A DNA stretch of 64,000 bases from Macrostomum lignano. Lineage: Eukaryota. Positions 5,694-34,564 of the stretch are shown piece after piece; position 1 is the first letter of the stretch, and every line of letters starts with the position of its first letter. The DNA is taken from assembly GCA_002269645.1 (NCBI GenBank), contig NIVC01000094.1:1-64000 (forward strand). The letters run 5' to 3'. The notes below the pieces were generated by a model. It was not told the origin of the DNA and did no database searches. It saw nothing but the letters and a program-made list of their open reading frames with translations. The translations under genes were made by a program, and so were the position numbers.

Positions 5694-6318
5694 ATGAACG
5701 CAAAACTGCTGGCGTATTTCCTCATTTTGTTCTGATCAGTGACGGCGAACGGGTGGCCGGTTTCGATGTGAACAACATCAATAGCGTCGATGTTGGCAGC
5801 GATGGAGTCAGCGTCACCTCGGACAATGGAAATCCGTTCTATTATGACGAGTGCAGCGGCTCGCTAAGCGGCTTGAGTATTCAAACTGGCTGTCACAGAC
5901 GGTGGAAGCCGCTGTTCTACGTGTGCGCAGTGGTTGGCGGAATTGCGGGACTCTTCCTCGTCACAGGCTGCTGTTGTTGCTGCTGCTGCACCTGCTGCAG
6001 ATCTAAGTCAGCGACGCCCGTGAGAACCATCAACAATGTGTCTGATGCAGGTTGACTTCGGAGCAGAAATTTCTGATCTAGGGGGAGCTGAGGGGTATAA
6101 GTGAAAAAGGCAAATGAGTGAGAAAGGTCCAGCTTATCTATCCAGCTTACTCATTGAGGTAGGCTGAGCTCCAATAATTTCACTCGTGCATGCAGCCTAA
6201 TCTTTCAAAATTCCAGGCAGCAGCCCAACCTCCAGTAGTGGTGATGAGCAGCGTTGCAGCTCCGTCGCAGCCTCATCTGCAGCAGCAGCAGCAGCCACCG
6301 CCTCCTCCAAAGTACTGA
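5694..6318 (+). CDS. Small single-pass membrane protein A (signal peptide, 2-Cys ectodomain, TM, poly-Cys, Pro-rich PPxY tail); 2 exons 5694-6019 and 6217-6318
   Basis: ATG 5694 MNAKLLAYFLILF joins ORF 5753 if one base is restored near 5732. GNPFYYDEC...TGCHRRWKPLFYVC-TM-CCCCCCC. Donor CCC|GTGAGA (6020), acceptor TTCCAG|GCA (6216), phase 0, giving the tail AAAQPPVVVMSSVAAPSQPHLQQQQQPPPPPKY*. Clear paralog of the 14.3-15.5 kb gene. Confidence 0.75.
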
Positions 6319-6512
6319 TTTGAACTGTTCTAAAAAAGCACTATTAGGCTATCCTGTGCAGCAGATATTAACGCTAAATTATAGCATGTACTTTAACCTA
6401 TTTATTTTAAAGCTGCAGATGAACTTTACTGCCGTATCGAAATCGAGTCGCATGCGTCACCGTGGTACTTGAGTGCATGCACATTTGGCACCTCAGTTTA
6501 TACAACCAAATA

Positions 6513-7122
6513 CTGGACACCCTTCCTCTGGACACAATCTCCTTGGACACCCTTCCTCTGGACACAATCTCCTTGGACACCCTTCCTCTGGACACAATCT
6601 CCTTGGACACCCTTCCTCTGGACACAATCTCCTTGGACACCCTTCCTCTGGACACAATCTCCTTGGACACCCTTCCTCTGGACACAATCTCCTTGGACAC
6701 CCTTCCTCTGGACACAATCTCCTTGGACACCCTTCCTCTGGACACAATCTCCTTGGACACCCTTCCTCTAGACACAATCTCCTTGGACACCCTTCCTCTG
6801 GACACAATCTCCTTGGACACCCTTCCTCTGGACACAATCTCCTTGGACACCCTTCCTCTAGACACAATCTCCTTGGACACCCTTCCTCTGGACACAATCT
6901 CCTTGGACACCCTTCCTCTGGACACAATCTCCTTGGACACCCTTCCTCTGGACACAATCTCCTTGGACACCCTTCCTCTGGACACAATCTCCTTGGACAC
7001 CCTTCCTCTGGACACAATCTCCTTGGACACCCTTCCTCTGGACACAATCTCCTTGGACACCCTTCCTCTGGACACAATCTCCTTGGACACCCTTCCTCTG
7101 GACACAATCTCCTTGGACACCC
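6513..7122 (+). repeat. 30-bp minisatellite (TTGGACACCCTTCCTCTGGACACAATCTCC), about 20 near-identical copies
   Basis: Perfect 30-nt periodicity visible line by line. Produces open frames on both strands. Confidence 0.97.
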
Positions 7123-7959
7123 ATCTTCCCTTTTCCGCCTTCTTTTGATTCCTGTGGTGGAAGTAGCTGGCACGATGTACGAGTATACCGAATCGCGATT
7201 TGCTAATGACTCTTTCTTCATTGAAAATCTTGAATGCTTTTCCTAGACAGAAAGCATACAAGTAACAGCCAATTTCATATTATCAGTTGTCAATTAGTTT
7301 CAAGGGCAAGGGCATGTATAATTATTGCTTATTAACAATCAGGAAAATGCAAAAACACTGCATGAGGTAATCGCTATAGTTGCCTTAGTAAAGTAGAGGT
7401 GAGATTCTGTCTGAGTTCACCCTTTCTCGTTCTGACGACTTTGAACAACTAACAGACTCCATACGGCGTGAATGCTTAGTGGAATCCGTTGGGTAGAAAA
7501 GAAAACTTTAGGCGAAATAGTGCGGTGCATATTTGAGGCTCAGTCCCAGTGAAACAAGCAGAGCCATTTCCAGGAAATTGAGTACGAGCGTACTGCAATA
7601 CTGCTGAGTACTGGATTTCTATTTCGCGATTTTTACAATGCCGTTGTATTCTAGTGCCACGCGCGTTGCAATACTAAATATTAAATATATCCGCGATATA
7701 TGCTTCGTATATTCTAAATACAGTAACTTAAATGCCCTGCAGGTTTTAAAACATTCTTGCTACCGAAATCTTCCATGGCAAAAGCTAAAAATACAAAGCA
7801 CAGGCAGTCAGACAGTTACAACCTTGCGTACTACCTTTGCTCCCTTTTATAAGATAGAATCAATAATACACCTATAAAGAACCACCGCGCCAGTTCAATT
7901 CGGATCCTTATAGATACTTACTGGCAGGTAGACTTTGCGGGACAAAACAATTCACAGTT

Positions 7960-8228
7960 GACAACACCTATTAGACAATTTACAGCCACACCCATTACGC
8001 AATTAACAGCCACACCCATTAGGCAATTTACAGCCACATCCATTACGCAATTTACAGCCACACCCATTAGGCAATTTACAGCCACATCCATTACGCAATT
8101 TACAGCCACACCCATTAGGCAATTTACAGCCACACCCATTCGGCAATTTACAGCCACACTCATTAGGCAATTTACAGCCACACCCATTCGGCAATTTACA
8201 GACAAACCTATTAGACAGTTTACAGCCA
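7960..8228 (+). repeat. 24-bp minisatellite (TTTACAGCCACACCCATTAGGCAA), about 11 copies, followed by CT-rich low complexity to about 8430
   Basis: Direct inspection of tandem copies. Confidence 0.92.
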
Positions 8229-9404
8229 AGCTATCTCCTGTGTCTCAGGCATCTCTTCTACTGATCAATTTGAGAATACTCCTATCCATCCGAGTCTCTC
8301 CTGTGCCTCAGGTCTCTCTCATTTTCTCCAGTTTCTTCAAATCTCTCCCAGTCTCTCCCGATCTCTCTTAATCTCCCCCAAGCTCTCCGCAGTCTCCCTC
8401 GCTTTCTCTAATTTTCTTCCAGTCTTTCCCAGTGTCTCAAGCCTAGCCCTAGCGGCTCTTCTTTTCAGAATTTTTCGCTTTGTCATTTAAAAAAATTCCA
8501 GCGAAGAAGCAGTTAGTAAAATCGAAAAGTAAAAAAAGTTATAGATAGACCATAGACAAAGCTGCTCTGACTCCGGGAAAAAGACACTAATTAGATAGGA
8601 GAAAAACATTTTTCACCTTTTTACGAGTCTACTTAAATCGTAGACGTTAATAAAATTAGCCATATAATCGCTGAAAAATTTCCAATCGAATGGTACAAAA
8701 ATGATGCCAAAATTAGTAGGCATTCAAGCTGTAGGTGAAATTTTTTATAAGGTACAGTTTTAGTTAGATTTGTTGGGCTCTACTGTATACAAACTTTAAA
8801 CTCTCGTTTCTGCAGCAGAAAATTTTTGGCAAGGACCACTGTAGTCTTTGATTTTTTGGTAGCTAGGCCTACTCACAAAAGCACTATAAAATTCGACATA
8901 AAAATGTTTCCACTAATACAATAAGACTCAAGAGCTCAGCAAGTAACATGCATTAAAGTCAACCTCATATTTAACTTTTTTCGAAATTGCATCTTAATCA
9001 ACTAAAAGGTGACATATATAACGGGGGTCTTTGTCTCAAATGCAGAGCATAAAATCAATCAACGCCACGTCACATGAGGTCTTTAAAAAATCTCAATTTC
9101 TACCAAAAATTTGCTGATAGACTATTGATAGAATATTGCGGAAACGGAGATGATACTCGTATATTAATATGCGATTGTTAAGCTATTGCAATAATATTCT
9201 GTTACTATCCATTCTCCTTGGATCTGAGAACTGCATTTCTAAACAATCGCGCAAAGGCCCTTCCAGATCCCCTTACGAGAACCCTCTATCAGGATAAGAG
9301 ATTCGACATAAAAGTTGGCGATAAAGTTTGCAGTGTATCTTCAAATTTTCGTTGATCCCCATGCGACACGTATTGACGATTTTGAGCGACGAACAGGCTG
9401 TAAG

Positions 9405-10166
9405 TTAGAACACGGACAGGCACTCGCAAATGTACTTCCGGTTGAAAGAGCATCCGGCATCATCGACGCCAATCTTGTGACTAGAGTGGACAGCAGCGCA
9501 GCCCTCACCAGGCAATCCGTTATTCGGCCTCCCGGGCTCCCAGACGTCGGCCCGGATGCTCTCGTTGCAGGCGTCCCAGATCCAGCCTTCCGTCTTGCCC
9601 GCAGAGCCCAGAATCTGGTGGCCACCCAGGTACAAACTCTCCACAGGAATGTTCGACACGTTCTTGATCCACATCAGGTGACGGGACTCGTCCGAGTCCA
9701 GAGCGTCCGCGAACTTCGACAGTCCGGCCTCCTGTCCGCACCGGGAGAGAGCGTCAGCCCAATTGGTCACCAGTGAGGCCGACACCTTGTATGAGGATCC
9801 GAACTGAGAGTAGTCGTATCCGGGTGGGCACAGGCGACCCGGAGCTACTCCAGGTAGCGATCTCACGTACACGGTTACTCGGTGAGTGCAGTTGGCCACT
9901 GACTGCACTCGGTGGCTGCACTTGTCGAACAGGAACAGCTTGCAGAGGCAGTCGCCATCCGGCAGCGAGAAGGCCCGGCAGTTCGGCATCTTGGCGCAGT
10001 GCAGGCTGCAGGACTGCGGATCGCACGAGCCCCACACGGTGTGGGTGAAGCTGGACGTCACGCAGTCAGCGCCAGAGATCGGGTGGAAAGTCGCTTTCAG
10101 AGAGCCGCAAGTTGGTTCACTTTTTACCACGACACTCAGCGTCAGCAGTAGCAGCAATAGCAGCAT
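9405..10166 (-). CDS. Secreted PAN/Apple domain + C-type lectin domain protein (253 aa)
   Basis: Single intact ORF. Signal MLLLLLLLTLSVVVKS, PAN-like CSLHCAKMPNCRAFSL...CLC, then CTLD hallmarks CPPGY, NWADALSRC, LYLGG, WIW, WEPGRPNN, EGCAAV, DDAGC, KYICE. Confidence 0.88.
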   Translation of the reverse strand: MLLLLLLLTLSVVVKSEPTCGSLKATFHPISGADCVTSSFTHTVWGSCDPQSCSLHCAKMPNCRAFSLPDGDCLCKLFLFDKCSHRVQSVANCTHRVTVYVRSLPGVAPGRLCPPGYDYSQFGSSYKVSASLVTNWADALSRCGQEAGLSKFADALDSDESRHLMWIKNVSNIPVESLYLGGHQILGSAGKTEGWIWDACNESIRADVWEPGRPNNGLPGEGCAAVHSSHKIGVDDAGCSFNRKYICECLSVF

Positions 10167-13100
10167 TTCAACTGGTTGTCTGGTGACAGGAAATTTAGTT
10201 TTCTGTCGTATTACTGAGTATGTACTCGCTATAGGTCTAATGCAATATGGAAAATATCAGGTTTGAGTCCGATCAGCAACTTACAATTCAGAGTAAATGA
10301 TCCAATTAGAGCCAGCAGATTCAGACACTATCCAGTGGAAAAGTATTTGTGCTTTTGTCTTCTGTAGAAAAGTGGTGGAGGAATCTTTCAAATTTTTGCT
10401 TCTAGAGCAAGAGCTAGTAGATTTGGCATTTATTGAGTTCTGAGATGAGCCCTCTCTGCGCCAGAGGCAGCAGAGGCTCCTGCGTCGCATTTCAAACAGC
10501 ATTAGTAGCGTGAAACAGGATGGGAAGAGAAAAACCAATTAATAATTTGCATTACCGTTCCAAGCTGATTCGGAGCAACTTGTGTTACCCGCTCGCATCA
10601 TATGGGCTTAGGGAGATGCTCTCGGATCCCTTTTGTTACGATGGCAACGGCGGGCTGGGAGGCGATTGGGAAAAAGCGGAGCATGAGTTTACATCCATTA
10701 TCCACGCAAACACCGGTGGCTCAGAAAATTGCAAATTTCTCACCGCTTTTCGGTGAGGTTGCTGCCAGCTCTTGGCATTGCCGTCTGTTTCACTTCTCTT
10801 TTCCCCATCTGAGAAGCAGAAGCCGCTCGCTCCCCTTTCTTGAAATTCTTGTTTTCCAACTTTATTCACTCTGCCTTCCATCCTCATCAATAGGCTTCTT
10901 TTAGAGCTAAATTTATTGCGGCTGGAACCAGTTTGCTTGCTTAATGATTAATTCAGCAAAGTAAGCACCTGAATCGCTAGTTTTTACAAGCGAAGCGCGC
11001 TAGATTCCGTGTAAGCAGTGTAGAGGCATGTCCCAAATGCAGAGAGCGATTTTAAATTAGCTAGCTACCAAAAATCAACTCTATTTTCTAAAAGTGACCT
11101 ACAAGCCGTCTATGATACTATAATACAAATGCGAAAATAACGATTTGGCAACAATTGGGTAAAATGAACAGCACAGAGCTCATTAGCTGACTCCGCGTTA
11201 ATTGAAGAAATAAGGCTTTGATCCTGAATAATGCGAGCCAATCATTTTTGCAGGAGGGCTGCGCGGGCACCCTGGCGAAACGCTTTCAGCGACAAAGTCT
11301 CAAGAGCGGCACTGAAGCAATTCCTCTGACTCCTGAGCTCATTAAAGCACGCACTCATACACACGCTCGCACAGGGTGGCACAGCGGGTGAACAGAACAT
11401 TTCTTTGAATAGTGTGAACTGAAGCAATGCAGAGTCAAGTCGGGCCACACACATCAATTACCGAATTCATTCAAAACCCAAAAATTTCAACCAGCTCATG
11501 CGCTTACATTTGGCCCTGGCCTAGCTCCTCGTAGTATGGCTAGCAAGCCCCAGTAGCCAAGCATTATCGTACTGACTGCGAATTGTCTTTGTTCCAACCT
11601 GCAGCCTCTCCCCCGCGTCTCTGCTTGTCCTCTGCTTGTTATCGCCACTGGAACCCAGCTTAGATTCTTTAGGCCCGAGGCTCTCGAACTCCTAGTAAAT
11701 ACATGCCACACATTCAATCCAACGTCTCGTCGCAGGGATTAGCCCACGCATTTTAAATGGTTGTCTGGAGGCCGTCGATAGCGTGCAGAGTGAATGTACT
11801 ATATTAATTTTAATTCTCGAATATTTTTACTTGTTTGTTTATAATAGGATGGTTGTGTCGCTGACCAAACAGAAAAAATGTAGCGGCAAAATCCTGGTTA
11901 TTACACAGGGAAACAGCGAATTCCAGCGCGCTGTTTTAGGTGGTCAATATGAAATCAGTTCCATGTCATTTTGTGACTTACCTTTGCCCGTCGAATTTGA
12001 TTCTGTGAGCTAGAAGGCGTGAGGGCACAAGGCAGGCCCAATCAAAGATTTGGTTGGATCAGGATCCATGGAGGAGGTGCTACACAAGTGGGCGCAAGTT
12101 TTTAATCCGGTTTCGCATCATCTGATATTGTTTTCAATTGCCTCTTGCTAGGCCTGATACAGTTTCCAACATACGAGCGTAATACTGCATGCACCTTAAC
12201 ATGTTCTTCATATCTAGCACTCCACTATCTAGGCTTAGAATAATCTTAAGAGTATGGAATGCTAAGGAATTAAGTGACTCGTACAGGGGCATTGTCCAAG
12301 TACCTTTGCTGCTTGCATTCAAGAACGTTTATTTACTGCCGTAAGATCAGGGGTAAATTCCAAGCTGATACTGTGTGAGCACAAATTGTCCACCGAAGCA
12401 GGGACATGAGCATGCAATTGCCAAGAGCGTACTCGTACTTTCAATTTAATTCTGATTTCTCATATTCTAAAAATCGAGTGAACCCCTAGAGATGCCAGCT
12501 GTTGCAGGAAGAACGGTTTATTATAGTTTAAACTAAGTTCAGTCTGAAGTTTCAGATCTTTAGAAACCGCATGTAGTACATGCATGTATAGTGCGTGCCA
12601 GTAGGCTGAGTCAAGAGAGTGCTGTTCACCTTTAAGGTGAAATATACAGTTAAAATGCTTCCCAAAATTATATCCCACAAAAAGATCTCGATTTTTATTG
12701 AAGAATCTGTTCGATTTTACTGAGGAGTGAGGACAGCCTAATCAGAGTTAATGAGATGGTGCCAACCATGGAGCATAAAATTGTCCTAGACTTTCCAGCC
12801 ATAAAAATACTCGTAATAGAGGATATAGATGTTGCAGAATCCTCGGGATAATATACTGCAGGCATGATTTCCAATGGCTTCAAAAAACCGGTCTATGACG
12901 CCCGGCCAGTGTCCCTGGGTTTTAGGTAGGGCAAAGCAGAGAATTCAGAAACAGTTGTGGTACCACAAGTTTAACCTCAACTTTGATCTCCCATAATCTC
13001 AACTTGCTTTTTGATGCCTATAGACATCGACAAAGAGGAAACAGCTGAGGGACATGACTGATCACACAGAATTAACAGGGAAGTAAATGTACTTTCGTAC

Positions 13101-13189
13101 AAGGAAATATAGAGATAGCAGGTGAGCACAAGGAGCGGATTGTAAAGGCCAAAAGATGAGAGAAGTACGAGCAACGTACGAAAGCTGCT

Positions 13190-13780: not shown

Positions 13781-14294
13781 CCTGCCTGCTGGCTAACACC
13801 GGCGTCTGCTGCATTTGCATAACAGACCTAAGTTGCACCCTGACACGCTGATCTTGTTTTATAAGCCATAAACGACAGCGCATTTTGTTGCTTTGTTGCA
13901 CAACAAAAACCAATCAATTATTAAGTTGGTAAAATAAAACAGATTGCGCTCGTAGAAAACAAAAACGCGCACTTGCAAAAGTTTGAAAACAACTTGGTTG
14001 TTTATTAAAATTTTCCTCAATTGTGACGTATTTTTAGCCGCTCGTCTACGTATAGAACGGTAAGGAATTCCGGTTATGCAAGACTGCACCAACCAATAAC
14101 AGTAAAATTCACGTTACAGATAAAAAATAATGTTTAACTACGGGCTTCCGAGTAACAAGGATTATACCGGTACATTATGTTTTAGCTTGAAAAAAAGTAC
14201 AATACGAGTATTTAATTAATTATAAACATTTTAAAGCTTGAATAAAGTGCAGTTGAGTAAAGTGCAGGATTCACCCAGTTCGGATGCCATCAAT

Positions 14295-14363
14295 TCAGGC
14301 CTGCAGCATCGGAGCATCATAGCTGGGCCGAGTGACCACGACATGGCTGGTCTGGTTCATCAC
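14295..14363 (-). CDS. Small single-pass membrane protein B, exon 2 (cytoplasmic tail VMNQTSHVVVTRPSYDAPMLQA*)
   Basis: TTCCAG|GTG acceptor at 14364, phase 0, and stop at 14295-14297. Splicing removes the 26-bp minisatellite. Inferred, no transcript evidence. Confidence 0.6.
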   Translation of the reverse strand: MMNQTSHVVVTRPSYDAPMLQA

Positions 14364-14409
14364 CTGGAATGAGGAGAGTGGAGCAGCCCGTTGTCTGACT
14401 GGTTCAGCA

Positions 14410-15120
14410 TGTGATTGAGCTGGGTCTGGCAGTGACTGAGCTGGGTCTGTTTAGACAGTGACTGAGTAGGATCTGGTCTGACAGTGACTGAGTAGGGTCT
14501 GGTCTGACAGTGACTGAGTAGGATCTGGTCTGACAGTGACTGAGTAGGGTCTGGTCTGACAGTGACTGAGTAGGATCTGGTCTGACAGTGACTGAGTAGG
14601 GTCTGGTCTGACAGTGACTGAGTAGGGTCTGGTCTGACTGACTGAGTAGGATCTGGTCTGGCAGTTATTGAGTAGGGTCTGGTCTGGCAGTGACTGAGTA
14701 TAGGGTCTGGTCTGACAGTGACTGAGTAGGGTCTGGTCTGGCAGTTATTGAGTAGGGCCTGGTCTGGCAGTGACTGAGTATAGGGTCTGGTCTGACAGTG
14801 ACTGAGTAGGATCTGGTCTGACAGTGACTGAGTAGGATCTGGTCTGGCAGTGACTGAGTAGGGTCTGGTCTGGCAGTGACTGAGTATAGGGTCTGGTCTG
14901 GCAGTGACTGAGTATAGGGTCTGGTCTGACAGTGACTGAGTAGGGTCTGGTCTGACAGTGACTGAGTAGGGTCTGGCAATGACTGAATAGGGTCTGGCAA
15001 TGACTGAATAGGGTCTGGCAATGACTGAATAGGGTCTGGCAATGATTGAGTAGGGTCTGGTCTGGCAATGACCTGAGTAATTGGGTCTGGAAGTGACTGA
15101 GTAGGGGTTGGCAGTGACTA
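14410..15120 (+). repeat. 26/28-bp minisatellite (GACTGAGTAGGGTCTGGTCTGACAGT) plus 21-bp derivative, in the inferred intron of protein B
   Basis: Unit is not a multiple of 3, so the 372-aa read-through ORF cycles through frames and is likely incidental. Confidence 0.92.
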
Positions 15121-15151
15121 AGCGGAGGGGTGAAGCACCCCAGAGGCGCAC

Positions 15152-15478
15152 CGGTCGGTAGACGGTGCGGTTCTTCCTGCAAGGCGCGCAGCAGCAGCAG
15201 CAGCAGCAGGAGAGCAGGAACAGGGCCAGGAGACCTCCGGCGGCGATGCACACGTAGAACAGCGCCTTCCAGACCCGACGGCAGCCGGTGTCGATGCCCT
15301 GCGTTGACACGCCGGCTTTGCACATCTCGTAATAAAACGGGTTGCCATCGTCTTTCTTAACCTCGATGCTGGCGCCGCTCTTGCCCATATTGAAGTTGAT
15401 GCCGCTGCCATCGCTGGCGACACCGCTGGCCAGCAGGGCCAGGACAGCCAGAGCGCAGATATTGAGGCGGCAGAGCAT
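15152..15478 (-). CDS. Small single-pass membrane protein B, exon 1 (signal peptide, 2-Cys ectodomain, TM, poly-Cys)
   Basis: MLCRLNICALAVLALLASGVAS signal, GNPFYYEMC...TGCRRVWKALFYVC, TM, CCCCCCC. Phase-0 donor CCG|GTGCGC after a Pro codon, the same position as in paralog A. Confidence 0.85.
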
Positions 15479-20673: not shown

Positions 20674-21644
20674 TCAGACAAGGCGACCAGATTTCCACAC
20701 CTGAGTGTGGAACTGCAGCACGTAGGAGTGGCGATGCTTCCACTGGCAAAGTGCCTCCTCTTCGTCCGTCATCCGGTTGAGATCGCGGCACGGCCCAGCC
20801 GTGACATTGTCCACCACCCAGGAAAATGGATTAAACTCGCGGGCGGGGGCCAGGCAGATTCCGCTGGCTGGGTCCATGGCAGCTACCCTCAGTGCCCGCG
20901 TCAAAGCCACGGGGCCGCAGATCTCCTCGGGAATGCCGCCGCCGGCGCCAGCAGCCTCGGCAATCTCGGCGGCCATTACGTTCGCTTTGACGCCTCGCAG
21001 CAGGCGAAGCCAAAACGGATGTCCCGGCTCGGCAGAATAGAGGAACGAATTCTCGTAGTAGCCGAAGCTGTCGCCTGGCCCGCGCAGGGTGCGCATCCGG
21101 CCGACCAGAACTCGGCAGTCGGCGAGCCGGTGCTCGAAGCTTCTCAGGCACACGTTGTCCAGGTCGGTGTAGATGCCGCCGAATTTGTACATGTAGATAT
21201 ACCTGCGGCCATAGGGGGGGCACTCAAATTACGGTGTGGAGGTTGCATCCTACCTTGCTAAACAAGTCTACCTAACCTTGCAACATCGGCACGGCAAATC
21301 GGGTGCCGTCGCAGACCCCGGATGTAGGTGTCGAGGAACCAGGGTGCCGCCCGCCGCACCAGCGACTCATTCATTTCATCCGTCCACAGCAGATGGCGCC
21401 AGGTTGGAAAGCACTGGCGCCAACTGTTTCGCCAGCGATCAAAGCGAGGCGTCAGAGTTGAAGTTTTCCAGCTCTGATGCACGATGCGACTCCCGTCGTG
21501 ATGAGGAAACAGCGGCTGCTGAAGTTTTGGAGGCGCCGGCAGAGGGTTTCGCGTGGCGATGAAGGTCAGAACCCCGACCACGGCAAGCAGCTCGGCGAAA
21601 ACGCACGCAAACAGGCGCTGCCCAGAGACTTTCAGCAGTGCCAT
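20674..21644 (-). CDS. Glycosyltransferase family 32 (DXD sugar-binding; OCH1/SUR1-like), type II membrane, about 298 aa; exons 21277-21644 and 20674-21202
   Basis: N-terminal TM, IVHQSWKT, LLWTD, PWFLDTY. The 74-nt intron (AG|GTTAGG...CCGCAG|G) rebuilds RADVARYIYMYKFGGIYTDLD. Also NSFLYSAEPGHPFW and ICGPVALT. Confidence 0.9.
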
Positions 21645-21670: not shown

Positions 21671-21701
<31 letters not shown>

Positions 21702-22477: not shown

Positions 22478-24360
22478 GGGAGTACGAGATCTGCTAGCAG
22501 GAAATCTGCTAGCCGAAGTTTGCTAGCGAGAAATTTGCTTGCCGAAATCTGCTAGCCGAAGTTTGCTAGCCGAAATGTGCTAGCCGAAATCTGCTAGCCG
22601 AAGTTTGCTAGCCGAAATGTGCTAGCCGAAATCTGCTAGCCGAAGTTTGCTAGCCGAAATGTGCTAGCCGAAATGTGCTAGCCGAAATCTGCTAGCCGAA
22701 GTTTGCCAGCCGAAATCTGCTAGCCGAAATGTGCTAGCCGAAGTTTGCTAGCCGAAATGTGCTAGCCGAAATGTGCTAGCCGAAATCTGCTAGCCGAAGT
22801 TTGCCAGCCGAAATCTGCTAGCCGAAATGTGCTAGCCGAAGTTTGCTAGCCGAAGTTTGCCAGCCGAAATCTGCTAGCCGAAATGTGCTAGCCGAAGTTT
22901 GCTAGCCGAAGTTTGCCAGCCGAAATCTGCTAGCCGAAATGTGCTAGCCGAAGTTTGCTAGCCGAAATGTGCTAGCCGAAGTTTGCTAGCAGGAATTTTG
23001 CTAGCGAGGATTTTGCTAGCCGAAATCTGCTAGCAGGAATTTTGCTGGCAAGGATTTTGCTAGCTGCCTTGCTCTCGTAGCTGTTGCATGTTATTTGCTG
23101 TGTTTTGATTCCGATTTGAGCTGCTTTGATTCGTACGAGTAATTATATAACTTATATACCATATACTGCCATATACTTATATACTGCCACTACCAGCCAT
23201 TAAGACTGAAAGTTGTGTGTATAGATAAGTTTAAATTTAACTACCTGAACTACAGCTGCCTGAGCTACCTGAACTACGGCCTTACAGCTGATAATGCTAA
23301 AACATTATCAAATGTCAAATATCAAAGTGCAAACGTTTTTTTGCAACCCATGTCAATAGATTGACTTGTTTCCAGGCAATGGTATTGCATGGTTTTGGCT
23401 AAAAATGGTCAAGAGAAGTGGTTAAAAATCCCAAATCTTTTTATAACTAAAAACCATATCTGATAAATAATTGCTGTAAAAAGCCAAAATGTCTACATTT
23501 TATGATTGCATTGTTGGGCACACTTATAATTTTATTTTAGCCCGCGATCGGCCTCTTTCTAAACACTTAAAAAAGAAAATCGGTCATTTATCTTGACCAA
23601 AGTAGCCACATTTTAAAAGGTGTTAAGAAGAATAGAATTAACAAGCACATTTTGTATATAAATTACATTCAGATTCTTGTCATACGAGTGCTAGCTACAA
23701 GGAAATTTCTGATTTAGTAATTTCTAATTGCATTATATTACGATACAACAATGCAGGCTGCAATTAGTATTATATATTGCAATTTGAAGATCACTGCTAA
23801 TAAGCACGATAAAGAGAGTCATTAGAGCGAAAAACGCAAATTTATTTGTCCTGCATGATAAGTCCTGCAAAGTTTCTTGCGAAATTGGGCAAGAAAAAAT
23901 GTCTCTAGCAAATTACAACTTCGTAAATTGCTGTTCGCCGGTTTTGGTTATATTATCGCTAGCAGATTTCGGCTAGCAAAATCCTCGCTAGCAAAATTCC
24001 TGCTAGCAAACTTCGGCTAGCAGATTTCGGCTAGCAGATTTCGGCTAGCACATTTCGGCTAGCACACTTCGGCTAGCAAACTTCGGCTAGCAGATTTCGG
24101 CTAGCACATTTCGGCTAGCACACTTCGGCTAGCACACTTCGGCTAGCAAACTTCGGCTAGCAGATTTCGGCTAGCACATTTCGGCTAGCAAACTTCGGCT
24201 AGCAGATTTCGGCTAGCACACTTCGGCTAGCAAACTTCGGCTAGCAGATTTCGGCTAGCACATTTCGGCTAGCAAACTTCGGCTAGCAGATTTCGGCAAG
24301 CAAATTTCTCGCTAGCAAACTTCGGCTAGCAGATTTCCTGCTAGCAAATTTCATAGACCC
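22478..24360. mobile_element. Foldback-type non-autonomous DNA transposon (1883 bp), long TIRs built from a 14-bp tandem unit, 9-bp TSD
   Basis: Left arm 22478 to about 23034 and right arm about 23959-24360 are reverse complements (GCTAGCCGAAATCT arrays, GGG...CCC termini). Identical GCTTTTACA flanks at 22469-22477 and 24361-24369. About 0.9 kb AT-rich core. Confidence 0.92.
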
Positions 24361-24886: not shown

Positions 24887-26398
24887 ATGCTTTGTTTCCG
24901 GCTTATATTGTCGTTAGCCCTGCTTGCCACTTGGTTCGGATCTGGAAATGCAGCAAACAAACTCGAAATACTGCGCCAGAGGATTCGCAACGATGAGCGA
25001 CGGCTGAGCAAGGACTTCAACGCGCTGCAGGCAATGATGCTTTCAGGGACCATCAAAAATGCACCTGTGAGAAACTGGGGTCCCAGAGCGACTCAGCGAC
25101 CTTATTACAGGCCGCAGCCTGTCCTGCCGGCAAATGCACCTGTGAGAAATTGGGGTCCCAGAGCGACTCAGCGTCCTTATTACAGGCGGCACCCAGCTGT
25201 TCTACCGACAAATGCACCTGTGAGAAACTGGGGTCCCAGAGCGACTCAGCGTCCTTATTACAGGCCGCAGCCTGTCCTGCCGACAAATGCACCTGTGAGA
25301 AATTGGGGTCCCAGAGCGACTCAGCGTCCTTATTACAGGCCGCAGCCTGTCCTGCCGACAAATGCACCTGTGAGAAATTGGGGTCCCAGAGCGACTCAGC
25401 GTCCTTATTACAGGCCGCACCCTGTCCTGCCGACAAATGCACCTGTGAGAAATTGGGGTCCCAGAGCGACTCAGCGTCCTTATTACAGGCCGCACCCTGT
25501 CCTGCCGACAAATGCACCTGTGAGAAACTGGGGTCCCAGAGCGACTCAGCGTCCTTATTACAGACCGCAGATTGCCATGCCGACAAATGCACCTGTGAGA
25601 AATTGGGGTCCCAGAGCGACTCAGCGTCCTTATTACAGACCGCAGATTGCCATGCCGACAAATGCACCTGTGAGAAATTGGGGTCCCAGAGCGACTCAGC
25701 GTCCTTATTACAGACCGCAGATTGCCATGCCGACAAATGCACCTGTGAGAAATTGGGGTCCCAGAGCGACTCAGCGTCCTTATTACAGACCGCAGATTGC
25801 CATGCCGACAAATGCACCTGTGAGAAATTGGGGTCCCAGAGCGACTCAGCGTCCTTATTACAGACCGCAGATTGCCATGCCGACAAATGCACCTGGCCCG
25901 TCCCAGCGAAAACCTAATTCTAATTGGCAGTCTCGAAACAGCCCGACTAAAATCACAAATACTATTGGACAAACCGACCGGAATGTCAATCGTGTCAAAG
26001 CAGGCCGACCAAATGTCGCCAGCACGCCGAGCAGCAAAATCTTCATTCAAAAAACATACAATGTGCACGGCCGTTACCAAGTGACCCAAATCGTTCGGAA
26101 TAGTACAAATACCAACAGCAGCATTTTTGTGCACTACGTCTGCAACAGTCGGGGCGTCTGCGTCCGTCACTACACCGTAGGCTTCTACTCCACTGTGTCC
26201 GTCGGTGGAGTTGTCCTGCTCATGCTCATTATCTGTGCTGCCGTCATCGTTCGCCGCAGGCGATTGGTTGTTCAGCAGTACTCTGTCCTGTCTGACACGG
26301 ATGCTCAGCACATGATGGGTGGCACTATGAGAGTTGGCCCCCTGCCCGGCCAGGGGCTGTCCGTGCAGAGCGACCCGGTGATCGTGGGCCAAGTCTGA
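24887..26398 (+). CDS. Type I membrane protein C with eleven 25-aa Arg/Tyr/Pro-rich repeats (503 aa)
   Basis: Signal peptide MLCFRLILSLALLATWFGSG, 11 x NAPVRNWGPRATQRPYYRP(Q/H)(PVL/IAM)PT, unique Ser/Thr/Asn region, C-x5-C, TM VSVGGVVLLMLIICAAVIV, RRRR stop-transfer, YSVL tail. Unique coherent flanks on both sides of the repeat support a real gene. Confidence 0.85.
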   Translation: MLCFRLILSLALLATWFGSGNAANKLEILRQRIRNDERRLSKDFNALQAMMLSGTIKNAPVRNWGPRATQRPYYRPQPVLPANAPVRNWGPRATQRPYYRRHPAVLPTNAPVRNWGPRATQRPYYRPQPVLPTNAPVRNWGPRATQRPYYRPQPVLPTNAPVRNWGPRATQRPYYRPHPVLPTNAPVRNWGPRATQRPYYRPHPVLPTNAPVRNWGPRATQRPYYRPQIAMPTNAPVRNWGPRATQRPYYRPQIAMPTNAPVRNWGPRATQRPYYRPQIAMPTNAPVRNWGPRATQRPYYRPQIAMPTNAPVRNWGPRATQRPYYRPQIAMPTNAPGPSQRKPNSNWQSRNSPTKITNTIGQTDRNVNRVKAGRPNVASTPSSKIFIQKTYNVHGRYQVTQIVRNSTNTNSSIFVHYVCNSRGVCVRHYTVGFYSTVSVGGVVLLMLIICAAVIVRRRRLVVQQYSVLSDTDAQHMMGGTMRVGPLPGQGLSVQSDPVIVGQV

Positions 26399-27467: not shown

Positions 27468-27630
27468 TGTGTTAGGGAAGCGGTTCTCCACCTCATTGTT
27501 AGGGAAGCGGTTCTCCACCTCATTGTTAGGGAAGCGGTTCTCCACCTCATTGTTAGGGAAGCGGTTCTCCACCTCATTGTTAGGGAAGCGGTTCTCCACC
27601 TCATTGTTAGGGAAGCGGTTCTCCACCTCA
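27468..27630 (+). repeat. 27-bp minisatellite (TGTTAGGGAAGCGGTTCTCCACCTCAT) x6
   Basis: Perfect tandem copies. Confidence 0.95.
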
Positions 27631-30035: not shown

Positions 30036-30238
30036 ATGCTTGCTCAACTTGTTGCACCAATGCTACGGCTTCAGTCTATCTGGAGTAGCCACACTATGAT
30101 GGCTGCTCTTCCCTTTGCCTCTACTTGTGCCACATCTTTTTACCAATCTGCACTCAGACAGAATTCACTTCTGTCTGCTGCGCCAGCATGTCTGAGCTTT
30201 GGGCACCAACAGATTAGAGGCCTTAAGTACTATGACAA
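30036..30238 (+). CDS. MRPL36: Mitochondrial ribosomal protein bL36m, exon 1 (targeting presequence)
   Basis: MLAQLVAPMLRLQ...QQIRGLKYYD: acid-poor presequence ending in RG. Donor AA|GTGAGT at 30239, phase 2. Confidence 0.85.
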
Positions 30239-30577
30239 GTGAGTTCGAAATTTGCAACTAATTAATTGCAGCAATATATACACTGAAATCTGCCAGAGAT
30301 TCACCCTGAGATCCACCTTCCCACCCCAGAGATTCACTCTGAGATCCGCCCTCCCCACCCCAGAGATTCACTTAGATCTACCCTCCCCACCCCAGAAATT
30401 CACTCTGAAATTCGCCCTCCATGCCCTAGAGATTCACTCTGAGATCCGCCCTCCCCACCCCAGAGATTCACCCTGAGATCCGCCCTCCACCCAGAGATTC
30501 ACCGCTGAGATTCACCCTCCCCACCCCAGAGATTCACTCTGAGATCCGCCCTCCCCACCCCAGAGATTCACCCTGAG

Positions 30578-31188
30578 CCCTATTGGAATAAATGTTGAAA
30601 ACCCGCGGACGCGCGCTTTAGAATAGAGTCAAATTATTTTCCCGCGCTTTAGGATAATTAGAGATGTCCCGAAAGAGCAGTTTCCTCGAAATCAAAATTC
30701 GTTAACTTTCCAAACTCAAAATTGAAATTTTCCGAAATCAAAACGCAGAAAAACAAAGTTTAGTATGACCAATACTCACTTTTTACATTCGATTTACTGC
30801 TTATGCAAAATGAAATACACGTAGATGTAGCAGAAATTACTGCTTTTTTAGCGATTTTTGACTTTTCGATTTTAGCTTCCAAATTTTGACTTCTAATTTT
30901 ATTCGAAATTGAAATTTGCTCTTAATAAAAATTCTAATTTTGGAAAATTCAAATTGAAATTTCGGAACATCTCTAAGCTTTATAAATTATAAGTGTATAG
31001 GCCCCTTCCACAGAGGTATTAGATGACCCCTTTCCATGCATATGTATTTGCTAGAGCAGCAGCCAGCAAGAAAAGGCAGCGCGCGCACGCCGCGCAGGCG
31101 CTGCGCGCCTGTGCGCGCGCCGCGCTTTAGAAAAATTTCAAAAGTGCGCCGGACGCCGTCCGCGGATTTACAACTTTTTCCTATAGGG
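30578..31188. mobile_element. MITE (611 bp) with about 33-bp imperfect TIRs and 8-bp TSD
   Basis: CCCTATTGGAATAAATGTTGAAAACCCGCGGACG vs reverse complement of the right end CCCTATAGGAAAAAGTTGTAAATCCGCGGACG. ACCCTGAG duplicated at 30570-30577 and 31189-31196. Confidence 0.85.
30659..30975. mobile_element. Nested hAT-like MITE (317 bp)
   Basis: 16-bp TIRs TAGAGATGT(C/T)CCGAAA with one mismatch. Flanks AGGATAAT/AGCTTTAT match 5 of 8. Confidence 0.55.
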
Positions 31189-32100
31189 ACCCTGAGATCC
31201 GCCCTCCCCACCCCAGAGATTCACCGCTGAGATTCACCCTCCCCACCCCAGAGATTCACTCTGAGATCCGCCCTCCCCACCCCAAAGATTTACTCTAAGA
31301 TCCGCCCTCCCCACCCCAGAGATTTACTCTGAGATTCACCCTCCCCACCCCAGAGATTTACTCTGAGATCCGCCCTCCCCACCCCAGAGATTTACCCTGA
31401 GATCCGCCCTCCCCACCCCAGAGATTTACTCTGAGATCCGCCCTCCCCACCCCAGAGATTTACTCTGAGATCCGCCCTCCCCACCCCAGAGATTCACTCT
31501 GAGATCCGCCCTCCCCACCCAGAGATTCACCGCTGAAATTCACCCTCCCCTCCCCAGAGATTCACTCTGAGATCCGCCCTCCCCACCCCAGAGATTTACT
31601 CTGAGATCCGCCCTCCCCACCCCAGAGATTTACTCTGAGATTCACCCTCCCCACCTTAGAGATTTACTCTGAGATCCGCCCTCCCCACCCCAGAGATTTA
31701 CTCTGAGATCCGCCCTCCCCACCCCAGAGATTTACCCTGAGATCCGCCCTCCCCACCCCAGAGATTTACTCTGAGATCCGCCCTCCCCACCCCAGAGATT
31801 CACTCTGAGATCCGCCCTCCCCACCCCAGAGATTCACCGCTGAAATTCACCCTCCCCACCCCAGAGATTCACTCTGAGATCCGCCCTCCCCACCCCAGAG
31901 ATTCACTCTGAGATCCGCCCTCCCCACCCCAGAGATTCACCGCTGAAATTCACCCTCCCCACCCCAGAGATTCACTCTGAGATCCGCCCTCCCCACCCCA
32001 GAGATTTACTCTGAGATCCGCCCTCCACCCAGAGATTCACCGCTGAGATTCACCCTCCCCACCCCAGAGATTCACTATGAGATCCGCCCTCCCCACCCAG

Positions 32101-32263
32101 GCTGCGCAAGCGCTGCCGGCACTGCTACTTCGAACGCAACCCGGCGGGCTTCCTGACCATCCAGTGCCCGATGCACCCGAGGCACAAGCAGCAGGAGAAG
32201 CCGCGGCCGCCCAGTCCCAAGTGGGCCTTCAAGCGGCACATTTACAAAAGCGTCAACTGGTGA
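32101..32263 (+). CDS. MRPL36: Mitochondrial ribosomal protein bL36m, exon 2
   Basis: CCCAG|G acceptor gives KLRKRCRHCYFERNPAGFLTIQCPMHPRHKQQEK...NW*, the L36 C-x2-C...C-x2-HPRHKQ zinc-ribbon signature. Total 121 aa. Confidence 0.93.
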
Positions 32264-32544
32264 CCGAATTGCAGGCATCTTAGTCATCGACTGCTCATGA
32301 TTATAACTGAATTCAGCTTGCAGTTCTAGTTTATCATTATTGTTATAAAAAACTTAAATATAAATCGTACGAAAATTTACGTTTCTCTTATAAATGCATT
32401 CGCGCCTGAAAGAAAGTTCCCGTTAGACTTTGATGACTTTTTTTTATTTCAAATTATTTATTATTGGCGAAACCGCCTCGTGTCTGTTTCTGTCATTGTC
32501 ATTTGAAATGTTTTCAATATGGCTAACATGGATAAGCTACATAA

Positions 32545-33488
32545 AACCAACACCACCACCAGCAGCCCATAGAGTGAACCCAACAACACCACAACTAACC
32601 CATAGAGTGAACCCAACACCACCACAACTAGCCCATCGAGTGAACCCAACACCACCACAACTAGCCCATCGAGTGAACCCAACACCACCACAACTAGCCC
32701 ATCGAGTGAACCCAACACCACCACAACTAGCCCATAGAGTGAACCCAACACCACCACAACTAGCCCATAGAGTGAACCCAACACCACCACAACTAGCCTA
32801 TAGAGTGAACCCAACACCACCACAACTAGCCCATAGAGTGAACCCAACACCACCACCAGAGTTCATAGAGTGAACCCAACACCAACCAGCAGCCAGTAGA
32901 GTGAACCCAACACCACCACCAGAAGTCCAACGAGTGAACCCAACACCACCACCAGAAGTCCAACGAGTGAACCCAACACCACCACAACTAGCTCATAGAG
33001 TGAACCCAACACCACCACCAGAGTTCATAGAGTGAACCCAACACCAACCAGCAGCCAGTAGAGTGAACCCAACACCACCACCAGAAGTCCAACGAGTGAA
33101 CCCAACACCACCACCAGAAGTCCAACGAGTGAACCCAACACCACCACCAGAAGTCCAACGAGTGAACCCAACACCACCACCAGAAGTCCAACGAGTGAAC
33201 CCAACACCACCAGATCAAGTCCAACGAGTGAACCCAACACCACCAGATCGTCCAGATCGAAGTCCATCGAGTGAACCCAGCAGCACCAAAAGTCCATCGA
33301 GTGAACCCAGCAGCACCAAAAGTCCATCGAGTGAACCCAGCAGCACCAAAAGTCCATCGAGTGAACCCAGCAGCACCAAAAGTCCATCGAGTGAACCCAG
33401 CAGCACCAAAAGTCCATCGAGTGAACCCAGCAGCACCAAAAGTCCATCGAGTGAACCCAGCAGCACCAAAAGTCCATCGAGTGAACCT
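32545..33488 (+). repeat. 33/30-bp minisatellite (AGAGTGAACCCAACACCACCACAACTAGCCCAT and variants)
   Basis: About 29 copies in successive variant blocks. Source of spurious ORFs. Confidence 0.95.
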
Positions 33489-34111
33489 AATGCCGTTCGT
33501 CATCTCTGCGTATCTCTCGGCCTTCTGTCGCTATCGCGGAGAGATCTTTAACTTGCTGATGCTTTTAGAATCGATTAAATTTTGTTAATTTGATTCAACT
33601 CCTATAAAAAAATAATGCACAGCAAAGCTCTAGATGTTGGCATTTTGGCATTTTTGTCAGACTCAGACTTTATACTGGCATTTAGCTGTTTTCCATAGAC
33701 AAAAAAGCTGTTCTCTGCTTTGAGTCAACTCTGTTCGTCCCCGTCTTTCTCGTCTCACTCGCAAGCCTAGTCGTGCATCAATTGATACTTACTTGCGTTC
33801 TAAACGATACGGACTTGAAAACGATTCAGGCTGTGGGAATAAAGACAAAACAGACTCACCGTCTCGAAGATGCGCTATTGCGAGATGTCAGGTAAAGTGC
33901 AATTTTTGTCTGAGCCTAATCATATTCTAAACATTAATAAAAATTTTGGCCGTTTTAGCGCCCCAGGTACGAGTATAGTACACAGAAAACATACTTAGCA
34001 AAAAACGCTTTGAAACTACTTCTGGGAGAAATCAGTCAGTAGTATAGAGATGGCCATAGACAATACATGTAAATACGGAGCCAGCCAGCTAAATATGGTT
34101 CACAAGGCACA

Positions 34112-34564
34112 ATGTTTCCCGCCGCAGCCGTCACTGGCCTCCTGATGACGCTGCTGTGGGCCCAGCTGGCCGCCGCTGCTCCCATCTCCATCGAGATCGA
34201 CAACCCGCCGCTGCTCTTGTCGCCCGGCAACAGCCAGCCGCTGAGTCCGAGCCGTCTGAAATCGTTGCGTCTGGTGCAGATGTACCGCAGCCGGGAAACG
34301 CTGTTCGTGAAGGAGATCTGCATCGGCTGCGGCCCCGACCGCATCTGCACCCGGCGCTTCCGGCCGGCCTTCTTCGGCCTGCTGGCCTCCACGTCCATAG
34401 CGGTGTTCGTCATCGTCAGTCTCGTGCTGGCCACCCTGGTGAAGCGGCGGCGCCTGCAGGCCAAGCAGTTCGCCAGACCCGCTGCGTCCAAGCAGGCAGC
34501 TGAGCTCGTCTGCGGCGATGCGGCTGCTCAGGACTGCCCGGTGAAACCCGCGCTGAACTGCTGA
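34112..34564 (+). CDS. Small type I membrane protein D (150 aa)
   Basis: Signal MFPAAAVTGLLMTLLWAQLAAA, ectodomain with CIGCGPDRIC, TM LLASTSIAVFVIVSLVLATLV, KRRRL. GC-rich coding-like codon use. Confidence 0.8.
   Translation: MFPAAAVTGLLMTLLWAQLAAAAPISIEIDNPPLLLSPGNSQPLSPSRLKSLRLVQMYRSRETLFVKEICIGCGPDRICTRRFRPAFFGLLASTSIAVFVIVSLVLATLVKRRRLQAKQFARPAASKQAAELVCGDAAAQDCPVKPALNC

Follow-up and report, generated by a model that had tools for sequence, protein, structure and literature searches.

CYYR1 and other STMC6 proteins are PPxY adaptors for WWP1/2 (PMC11399591), and an extended PY motif is present in Commissureless (Comm; GLPSYDEAL) and PRRG4 (PMC5578492). These PY adaptors, comprising the Shisa-like/STMC6 proteins (CYYR1, WBP1, WBP1L, VOPP1 and TMEM92), Commissureless and PRRG1-4, resemble two of the proteins described here, A and B, in several respects: they are small and either type-I or signal-anchored, their ectodomain is short and contains Cys, their single TM has Cys residues in or near it, and (L/P)PxY lies in a brief cytosolic tail. 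A similar succession of elements is found in the reovirus p10 FAST proteins, which consist of a cystine loop of 11 residues, an MPER of 13 residues, a TM, two TM-adjacent palmitoylated Cys residues and a polybasic motif (PMC3961370); putative p10-like FASTs have been accepted with nooses of 10–14 residues (PMC12945298).

The window that we analysed, bases 1–64,000 of Macrostomum lignano contig NIVC01000094.1, contains four genes, A, B, C and D, that encode small single-pass membrane proteins and all lie inside 29 kb. We put at roughly one half the probability of the overall reading, namely four transcribed type-I proteins forming two pairs that are probably remotely related, with A/B as candidate PY adaptors.

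Gene models and the juxtamembrane motif

The four proteins share a pattern that was derived post hoc from A, B, C and D themselves, F.{4}C.{5,12}C.R.[WYF].{3}F[YF]. A search with this expression through the six-frame translation of the window returned four matches only, at 5837–5920 (+; FYYDEC-x12-CHRRWKPLFY in A), 15254–15337 (−; FYYEMC-x12-CRRVWKALFY in B), 26126–26188 (+; FVHYVC-x5-CVRHYTVGFY in C) and 34304–34375 (+; FVKEIC-x2-C-x5-CTRRFRPAFF in D). Each match directly adjoins the best hydrophobic 19-mer, as expected from a preliminary description that had placed the motif just before the TM, and MAFFT independently recovered the same register, in which F, C, C, R and F do not vary. The GG reported at +15/+16 after the second Cys is present in A, B and C, and D has TS there. 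The two ectodomain Cys residues assigned to D proved to be three.

The Mlig_3_7 annotation, which has transcript evidence as its sole basis (PMC5730564), includes each of the four genes, and A, B, C and D are therefore transcribed; this includes C and D, the two genes for which the preliminary description had regarded a lack of transcription as fatal to its proposal. We consider the gene models and the transcription of the four genes nearly certain. Pfam holds no family for any of the four proteins, in agreement with their description as a candidate new family.

Gene A is encoded on the forward strand by two exons. Exon 1 (5694..6019; PAA91091.1, Mlig034499g7, annotated "partial") encodes the signal peptide, ectodomain, Cys-loop motif, TM (~5921–5977) and poly-Cys, with CCCCCCCTCC at 5969–5998. 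A GT..AG intron of phase 0 (6020..6216) follows a Pro codon nine residues beyond the poly-Cys, and exon 2 (6217..6318) encodes AAAQPPVVVMSSVAAPSQPHLQQQQQPPPPPKY, which ends PPPPPKY and contains a C-terminal PPxY (PPKY, 6304–6315). The distal part of A, for which nothing had been recorded previously, thus comprises the poly-Cys and a second exon. In the NIVC01000094.1 copy a T-run has lost 1 nt (TTTT, ~5731–5734), which leaves the ATG at 5694 out of frame, its reading frame closing at a TGA after 13 codons; a second assembly copy (L001) has TTTTT and encodes an intact protein of 142 aa.

Gene B lies on the reverse strand. Its exon 1 (15152..15478; PAA91092.1, Mlig019594) encodes the signal peptide, ectodomain, motif, TM (~15197–15253) and CCCCCCCAPC (15179–15208), and is followed by a GT..AG intron, again of phase 0 (14364..15151), and by exon 2 (14295..14363), which encodes VMNQTSHVVVTRPSYDAPMLQA* with a PY-like PSYD at 14316–14327. 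The spliced product of 131 aa is identical to GenBank PAA91092.1. The "PY tail" previously ascribed to B needs to be divided: the long tail is a non-coding minisatellite of 26-bp period and ~27 copies within the intron (14423–15106, reverse strand), open in all three frames, while a PY-type motif does occur in the true last exon.

The A/B-type family

On sequence grounds A and B are certainly paralogues, with a Smith-Waterman z of 30 and a homologous position of the phase-0 intron. An exhaustive HMMER search with HMMs, covering 1.84 billion proteins, revealed two diverged A/B-type relatives, P0009 and P0010, on cDNA-like contigs from other samples. Between assembly copies the CDS of A differs at 0/428 positions versus 31/1386 in intron and flank (p=2e-4) and that of B at 2/396 versus 41/1921 (p=0.015), and the core of the A/B-type proteins shows pN of 0.16–0.30 versus pS of 0.43–0.80; the family is under purifying selection. 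That the A/B-type proteins form a real, constrained family is hardly in doubt.

The A/B-type tails read PPPKY* in A, PPPGYDVPML in P0009, RPSYDAPML in B and AKY in P0010. In the tail alignment the Tyr is invariant, with a canonical PPxY in only two of the four proteins, and C and D contain no canonical PPxY. The tail of B resembles the GLPSYDEAL of Comm (PMC5578492). The A/B-type proteins carry a run of 7–9 Cys residues where the TM meets the cytosol, a feature that STMC6 proteins do not share. These, in turn, have six ectodomain Cys residues in the arrangement C*C*CC*CC, compared with two in A, B and C and three in D. A Shisa-like identity of A–D was rejected, as none gave a Shisa, CYYR1 or WBP1 Pfam match even at E≤10.

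The PFYYD/E ectodomain, TM GG and post-TM Cys/basic residues of A and B are superficially like what we take to be the signature of FXYD proteins. The FXYD family (PF02038) comprises Na,K-ATPase regulators; A and B differ from it in having FYYD and the TM glycines ~19 residues further apart, a stretch that takes in the Cys loop. FXYD identity was rejected for each of the four proteins, with no PF02038 match at E≤10 and no FXYD chain among PDB matches at E≤10.

A further reading takes the A/B-type proteins as cellular homologues or functional analogues of reovirus p10. In that case the cystine-noose loop, with the aromatic segment next to the membrane, would disturb the bilayer, whether the opposing one or the protein's own; the Gly-rich TM, together with the palmitoylated Cys and the basic residues, would promote the opening of pores; and the proteins would serve in membrane remodelling or the fusion of cells. 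For B, P0009 and P0010 the best Pfam match, and nearly the only one, is PF07204 (Orthoreo_P10; E 0.0034–0.024, 15–17.7 bits), although all these matches fall under the gathering score of 21.4 and A has no match; nor do C and D match in the PF07204 search. B is collinear with profile positions 21–94 of 98, and the match depends on residue order, because 0/10 segment-shuffled decoys match. The scoring core, however, is the TM, Cys and basic stretch (positions ~45–76), and the Cys loops are not mutually aligned. The layout of the A/B-type proteins, with C-x12/13-C, a 9–10-residue aromatic segment, a GG/GGG TM, poly-Cys and CRKxR, is like that of p10, but they have cleavable signal peptides, ectodomains ~25–35 residues longer, and loops that are Gly/Ser-rich and not clearly hydrophobic. 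Moreover, p10 is viral whereas A/B-type genes are cellular and contain introns, no match was found in BFVD (by fold) or IMG/VR (by sequence), and the PY-type tails suggest trafficking instead. The likeness to p10, as judged from sequence, is weak, and we regard this reading as improbable.

The C/D pair and its relation to A/B

Gene C (24887..26398, +; the called gene in assembly copy L002) is a single exon of 503 aa that encodes, in order, a signal peptide, 11 repeats of 25 aa, an S/T/N-rich stalk, the motif, the TM (26189–26251, +) and RRRRLVVQQY (26252–26281, +), with a YSVL sorting-type signal. The repeats form an in-frame VNTR of 75-bp units (25057–25895, +). The 11 repeats noted earlier are accurate for one copy only, since the count is 11, 6 and 3 across three assembly copies, the other two copies of C encoding 302 and 378 aa. 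Gene D (PAA91096.1, Mlig027048) begins with a 22-nt exon (33870..33891, +) that carries the annotated start and encodes MRYCEMS plus 1 nt. A GT..AG intron of phase 1 (33892..34127, +) lies inside the signal peptide, and exon 2 (34128..34564, +) encodes the remainder of the signal peptide, a P/L/S-rich ectodomain, the motif, the TM (34376–34441, +) and KRRRLQAKQF (34442–34471, +), followed by the tail.

C and D match with z=10.8 overall and in two separate segments, the ectodomain (p=0.0005) and the TM plus tail (p<0.0005). The upstream V/L-x-Q-h-x-R and post-TM RRRL-x3-Q-[YF] that had been described as common to them are both present. We conclude that C and D are probably paralogues. Their TM and K/RRRR-L-x3-Q-[YF] are weakly like the ErbB2 TM-JM (PF21314; E 0.05–1 in Pfam, 0.6 in PDB). 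Kinship with ErbB was rejected because the matches are non-significant, the basic composition is of a generic stop-transfer/lipid-binding kind, and C and D are without kinase or receptor domains.

C, and possibly D, might instead be an ORF that is transcribed yet has no function or is very young, the real family being only A/B; C would then be an ORF that TransDecoder called across a minisatellite, with a chance signal-peptide-like start and a hydrophobic stretch. The window is rich in minisatellite ORFs and the repeat block of C is open in several frames. The non-repeat C-terminal CDS of C is no poorer in substitutions than the flank, diverging from the L003 copy at 9/503 versus 14/1002 positions (17.9 versus 14.0 per kb, p=0.79); of its changes, 4 are synonymous and 5 non-synonymous. 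In addition, C has no Pfam match, and the searches, the exhaustive HMM search included, found C/D-type proteins in M. lignano alone. Against this, the single change in the 289 nt encoding the motif, TM and tail is synonymous, compared with 8 changes in the 215 nt upstream, and the ORF is intact in 3/3 assembly copies despite the VNTR changes. The topology of C is complete and ordered (signal peptide, ectodomain, TM, RRRR), its match to D falls in two segments, and the CDS of D differs between assembly copies at 0/459 positions versus 8/667 in intron and flank (p=0.015). We therefore consider it unlikely that C is such an ORF.

The preliminary description had united all four genes in an old, locally duplicated family. 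The two paralogous pairs stand; the link between them is suggestive, with marginal statistics. As A/B-type sequences were added, the hhalign probability between A/B and C/D rose from 38% to 62% (P 7e-5), with an alignment that covers precisely the motif columns. The profile-profile score of 32.9 was reached by 0/900 TM-preserving decoys (mean ~16, maximum 31.6). In an A/B-only HMM the copies of C (E 0.003–0.011) and D (E 0.05) rank directly behind the true members, with noise from E 0.2, E-values that are non-significant if scaled to a proteome. Cross-detection thus exceeds the shuffled background, as had been anticipated, but only marginally.

The alternative is that A/B and C/D are two unrelated small-TM families, neighbours by accident, whose common pattern arose by convergence or by chance. 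Short ectodomains with a Cys pair are common beside TM helices, as are interfacial aromatic/basic belts, and the pattern was chosen post hoc. Several ectodomain z values are at background (A-C 0.4, B-C 0.0, B-D 1.7; B-D 0.8 overall), the hhalign probabilities stay within the range given, and HMM cross-matches reach 10–14 bits. The loops have 5 and 8 residues in C/D versus 12–13 in the A/B-type proteins, intron positions differ between the pairs, and their cytosolic parts show no likeness. The exhaustive search found no sequences bridging A/B and C/D, and among its 1.84 billion proteins there was no metazoan-wide family of the kind that a search of other metazoans had been proposed to reveal. 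Accidental neighbourhood has to contend, however, with the decoys, the growth of the hhalign signal and the ranking of every C and D copy, and also with a register to the TM that is identical, including the GG of A, B and C, the proximity of the four genes and the similarity of the B and C signal peptides (p=0.011). Two unrelated families are a serious but less probable explanation, and we somewhat favour common ancestry of all four genes. An AlphaFold model of B contains a beta-hairpin (E49-58/E61-70) with C53 opposite C66 at low confidence (pLDDT ~50); in the predicted structure of D the motif is disordered (pLDDT ~50).

A putative ectodomain/TM module

Under common ancestry, the four small type-I (N-out) proteins would derive from old local duplications, with unrelated genes now interleaved. 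The shared module consists, from the outside, of an aromatic residue and a Cys...Cys loop of 5–13 residues, presumably disulfide-closed; a 9-residue basic/aromatic interfacial segment, C-x-R-x-Ar-x3-F-Ar; and a TM helix that contains small residues, which in A, B and C are GG/GGG. In the A/B-type proteins the poly-Cys run is predicted to be a likely site of multiple S-palmitoylation; after it come a few basic residues and then a short tail that terminates in the PY-type motif. This tail would bring in sorting machinery or ubiquitin ligases of the WW-domain (Nedd4-family) type, while the ectodomain/TM module would engage a partner membrane protein, the target of the recruited machinery. By analogy with the known adaptors, we tentatively propose that A/B may act as palmitoylated PY-motif adaptors. 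C and D would have kept the ectodomain/TM module, with the poly-Cys and PY tail replaced by a polybasic RRRR/KRRR stop-transfer, and C carries in addition YSVL and a cationic repeat stalk of variable copy number. The four-gene set represents a modest, lineage-restricted novelty, short of a major discovery.

Four transcribed genes with a common juxtamembrane motif

Four small genes, A, B, C and D, in 29 kb of the window encode single-pass membrane proteins, and the preliminary description reported that all four carry the pattern F-x4-C-x(5-12)-C-x-R-x-[WYF]-x3-F-[YF] just before the transmembrane segment (TM). In a six-frame translation this expression has exactly four matches, at the places reported, and each match adjoins the strongest hydrophobic 19-mer of its own protein. 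The further common features hold as well: A, B and C have GG at +15/+16 from the second Cys, and in C and D the motif is preceded by V/L-x-Q-h-x-R and the TM is followed by RRRL-x3-Q-[YF]. MAFFT, unaided, recovers the same motif register. The mature ectodomains of A, B and C contain two Cys residues and that of D contains three, where two had been described; P0009 and P0010, two diverged A/B-type relatives, also have two in the motif.

GenBank annotates each of the four as a gene, and its annotation was built from RNA-seq and transcriptome assemblies only, with ORFs called by TransDecoder (Wudarski et al. 2017, PMC5730564). Since this annotation is exclusively transcript-derived, A-D are all transcribed, including C and D, whose transcription had been in question. 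Their gene IDs, sought for expression information, were not found in the searchable literature text or in the supplements of three papers. The motif observation and the four genes are real; several details of the preliminary description are artefacts of repeats or of the assembly.

Assembly copies, repeats and gene models

Regions of the window recur as collinear second copies on two further contigs at roughly 96-98% identity, NIVC01000337.1 (L001; window 3785-26335) and NIVC01002623.1 (L003; window 25667 to about 50365). A third record, L002 (NIVC01000094.1 of GCA_002269645.1, Mlig_3_7), is 100% identical to the window and has the same coordinates. The second-copy contigs fit the redundancy of the neopolyploid M. 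lignano assembly that is already known (PMC5730564). The window sequence is eukaryotic and dense in minisatellites, with minisatellite or microsatellite arrays at 14423-15106, 6514-7122, 31192-32098, 32547-33487, 34614-35765, 37199-38472, 41031-46482 and elsewhere; examples include a 20-mer repeated 272 times over 5.4 kb and (TAGA)x288 immediately downstream of D. Many of these repeats are open in several frames and produce long spurious ORFs. One such case is a Pfam 'DAN domain' match at 52610-53365, which lies inside a 14-bp array, and gene predictions of the WormBase era (P0004-P0006) traverse such repeats. Two arrays of one 14-mer stand in opposite orientation at 22492-23042 and 23958-24352 (TGCTAGCCGAAATT and GCTAGCAAATTTCG), with ~0.9 kb between them, and could be a foldback or transposon-like structure.

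All four genes differ in some respect from the preliminary description. The PY-type repeat tail ascribed to B, a 372-aa ORF with PYSV-type repeats, is an artefact of an intronic minisatellite of 26-bp period that is open in all frames. The annotated product of B has 131 aa, is spliced from CCG|GT to AG|GTG (intron 15151-14364), and in this spliced form is identical to PAA91092.1. The practical lesson is that long ORFs through repeats, such as the B 'tail', are unreliable in this minisatellite-rich genome. Gene A had been read from an ATG at 5694, which in the window copy gives 13 codons and then TGA, the remainder lying in another frame. The T-run at 5731-5734 is TTTT in the window copy and TTTTT in L001, where A is intact and encodes a protein of 142 aa (P0007). 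This loss of 1 nt, which breaks the frame, is why the window copy is 'partial' in GenBank (PAA91091.1, 5'-partial); the break is confined to the window contig and is either a PacBio homopolymer or assembly error or a null allele. A 26-nt GT..AG 'mini-intron' that would restore the frame was dropped in favour of the T-run deletion, given the TTTTT of the second copy. Nor does A lack a distal part, as had been stated: a second exon lies at 6217-6318 and ends QQQQQPPPPPKY*. A phase-0 intron is common to A and B; it follows a Pro codon that lies 9-11 residues beyond the poly-Cys run. The start of D was misplaced, the real one lying in a 22-nt upstream exon at 33870-33891. The 11 repeats described for C are present in one copy, but their number is variable: the 25-aa/75-bp unit (NAPVRNWGPRATQRPYYRPQ..) forms an in-frame coding VNTR (25057-25895) with 11, 6 and 3 units in the three assembly copies, whose proteins are 503, 378 and 302 aa long.

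To assess constraint, differences between assembly copies were counted in the CDS and in introns plus non-repeat flanks. The CDS is depleted in A (0/428 vs 31/1386, p=2e-4), in B (2/396 vs 41/1921, p=0.015) and in D (0/459 vs 8/667, p=0.015). The non-repeat C-terminal CDS of C shows no depletion between the copies (9/503 vs 14/1002, p=0.79). Of these nine changes, eight are upstream of the motif; most changes are in an S/T/N-rich stalk just before it, outside the motif-TM-tail part, where a single, synonymous change is found in 289 nt. The pooled ratio of synonymous to non-synonymous changes between assembly copies, 5:6 on the true gene models, is uninformative.

Several other ORFs were observed around the four genes. 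Just upstream of A, 3286-4557 (-) encodes 423 aa with a leucine-rich-repeat ectodomain (LRR_8, E 1e-15) and a single TM, and is an unrelated type-I membrane protein. A 253-aa ORF between A and B (9405-10166, -) has a signal peptide and weak PAN and C-type lectin matches. Two neighbouring ORFs, at 20674-21192 and 21258-21644 (-), each cover a portion of the DXD glycosyltransferase sugar-binding region (PF04488); they probably belong to a single gene that an intron or a frameshift interrupts. At 61899-62591 (+), the C terminus of the homeodomain is weakly matched (PF00046, E 1.6e-4, slightly below threshold), which may mark a homeobox gene exon.

Two paralogous pairs and their proposed relationship

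An exhaustive HMMER search covered 1.84 billion representative proteins; its query was a profile of the motif from all four proteins (A3). Besides the M. lignano copies of A-D, this search returned two more A/B-type proteins, P0009 (158 aa) and P0010 (162 aa); they are encoded on cDNA-like Logan contigs of roughly 1 kb with UTRs and an uninterrupted ORF (L004, SRR28338165; L005, SRR30276815). L005 starts with an Illumina adapter remnant. The remaining matches, fish protocadherin-like multi-TM models and translated repeats, were set aside as TM/poly-Cys noise. Word-indexed homologue searches with B, D and the C tail gave M. lignano copies only, or nothing, and protein searches with B and D gave Macrostomum lignano proteins only. 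Neither these word-indexed searches (D and C tail) nor the exhaustive search found a C/D-type protein beyond M. lignano, and the window and the second-copy loci hold no fifth family member.

A and B are unambiguous paralogues, with a Smith-Waterman z of 30, 43% identity, a common intron position and phase, and the relatives P0009 and P0010. Across the four A/B-type coding sequences (Nei-Gojobori) synonymous sites are near-saturated (pS 0.43-0.80), and pN in the core, from DGNPF to CRKNR, is 0.16-0.30 vs 0.42-0.54 in the N-terminal part. This restraint of the core against near-saturated pS, together with the relatives found elsewhere, shows that the A/B-type is real, constrained and present beyond the M. 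lignano genome. C and D, separated by 9 kb on one strand, align with a z of 10.8; the ectodomain (p=0.0005) and the TM plus tail (p<0.0005) are each significant by themselves. On this alignment C and D are likely homologous, a confidence that we hold short of firm because identity is only 20%, and they are probably tandem paralogues.

The larger proposal had been that the two pairs form one family and detect each other above background. Such signals were obtained, but they are marginal, and the cross-HMM E-values would lose their significance under a proteome-wide correction. Two-sequence profiles of each pair are reciprocal best non-self matches, at E 0.09 and 0.18 among 1083 six-frame segments. 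Aligned to each other with hhalign they reach 38% probability; with P0009 and P0010 added to the A/B profile the figure becomes 62% (P 7e-5), and the 41 motif columns that align are the same. In decoys the C/D alignment columns were permuted within topological segments, which removes the trivial TM-TM contribution; the real profile-profile score is 32.9, the decoys score ~16 (maximum 31.6), and none of 900 reaches the real value. An HMM of the four A/B-type proteins alone, run against 2302 segments, places the three copies of C, at E 0.003-0.011, and the two of D, at E 0.05, immediately behind true A/B pieces, with noise from E 0.2. Moreover, B (15413-15478, MLCRLNICALAVLALLASG) and C (24887-24958, MLCFRLILSLALLATWFGSG) have signal peptides of unusual similarity (shuffle p=0.011), on a level with that between true A/B homologues. 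Against a link, several pairwise ectodomain comparisons are at background, and loop lengths and intron positions differ. AF2 models, of too low confidence for a comparison of folds (mean pLDDT 50 and 49), have a Cys-paired hairpin in B, with C53 opposite C66, and a disordered motif in D. We put the probability that all four genes share a common ancestor at about 0.6: there are two solid pairs, and a superfamily over both is plausible but unproven.

Adaptor and fusogen readings of the A/B-type proteins

No Pfam family matches any of A-D or their relatives at threshold. Shisa-like/STMC6 proteins, with which the four had been compared, are defined by six conserved ectodomain Cys residues in the pattern C*C*CC*CC (PMC5578492). 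With two or three Cys residues, and with no match of any protein to the Shisa, CYYR1 or WBP1 profiles even at E<=10, membership in Shisa-like/STMC6 is rejected, and the comparison is retained as a functional analogy. The analogy, closer than the preliminary description could have shown, lies in the tail. The (L/P)PxY motif of Shisa-like/STMC6 proteins is canonical in A (PPKY*) and P0009 (PPGY), has the forms RPSY in B and AKY in P0010, and is absent from C and D. In the last exon A reads PPPKY*, P0009 PPPGYDVPML, B RPSYDAPML and P0010 AKYDVPMI, with an invariant Tyr. These motifs recall the extended PY motif of Comm (GLPSYDEAL) and PRRG4 (PMC5578492) and the PPxY tail by which CYYR1 recruits WWP1/2 (PMC11399591).

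The A/B-type proteins also have a run of 7-9 Cys residues at the cytosolic membrane face, which is likely a palmitoylation cluster. Because of the PY-type tails and the Cys run, the mechanism that we prefer, tentatively, is that A/B-type proteins would act as palmitoylated PY-motif adaptors. An FXYD assignment, suggested by PFYYD, GG and the Cys/basic stretch, was dropped: PF02038 gave no Pfam match and a PDB search no FXYD chain, and the FXYD signature stands immediately before the TM, whereas the A/B spacing from FYYD to the TM Gly is ~19 residues too long.

The top Pfam match of B, P0009 and P0010 is Orthoreo_P10 (PF07204; E 0.003-0.024), at 15.0, 17.4 and 17.7 bits, respectively, all below the gathering threshold of 21.4; A, C and D have no match to it. 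Ten segment-shuffled decoys gave no PF07204 match, so the match depends on residue order. In the reovirus p10 FAST fusogen a cystine loop of 11 residues is followed by a membrane-proximal region of 13 residues, a TM, a pair of palmitoylated Cys residues and a polybasic motif (PMC3961370). Its ectodomain dicysteine noose forms an intramolecular disulfide (PMC3961370, PMC12945298), and nooses of 10-14 residues have been accepted in putative homologues (PMC12945298). The A/B-type layout mirrors this order, with C-x12-C (A, B, P0009) or C-x13-C (P0010) as the candidate noose counterpart and, after the TM, CCCCCCC(A/T)(P/C)C, predicted to be palmitoylated, followed by R-K/S-x-R/K. Were the two kin, they would have in common a cystine noose, an aromatic segment next to the membrane, a TM rich in Gly, palmitoylated Cys residues and a polybasic stretch; A/B-type proteins would be cellular relatives of p10, and C and D de-palmitoylated derivatives of the same module. 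We consider this genealogy improbable, and take the resemblance as analogy, real kinship or shared function being improbable too. It is the TM-Cys-basic stretch that carries the score, the two Cys loops are not brought together by the HMM, A has no match, and the flatworm proteins carry signal peptides. Viral comparisons were empty: the B model, compared with viral structures by Foldseek, yielded noise only, and a scan of IMG/VR with the A/B profile found nothing. The resemblance to p10 is weak and matters only if confirmed, in which case a viral fusogen family of unknown origin would have a source or counterpart in an animal genome, and a flatworm would have a candidate minimal cell-cell fusogen.

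The family is lineage-restricted and is, tentatively, best filed among short PY-motif or palmitoylated single-pass adaptors, and its wider significance is modest because nothing ties it to other phyla. If our reading is correct, minimal type-I membrane proteins with a disulfide-looped juxtamembrane module form a lineage-restricted family in Macrostomum; its A/B-type branch, conserved in at least three sources, is under purifying selection and joins a site of heavy palmitoylation to a tail of PY type. The adaptor prediction is testable in M. lignano itself, a regeneration model in which transgenesis is possible. On that reading the family would be a structurally distinct new entry among the short PY-motif adaptors, which include Comm, PRRG, Shisa-like and CYYR1 and control receptor surface levels.
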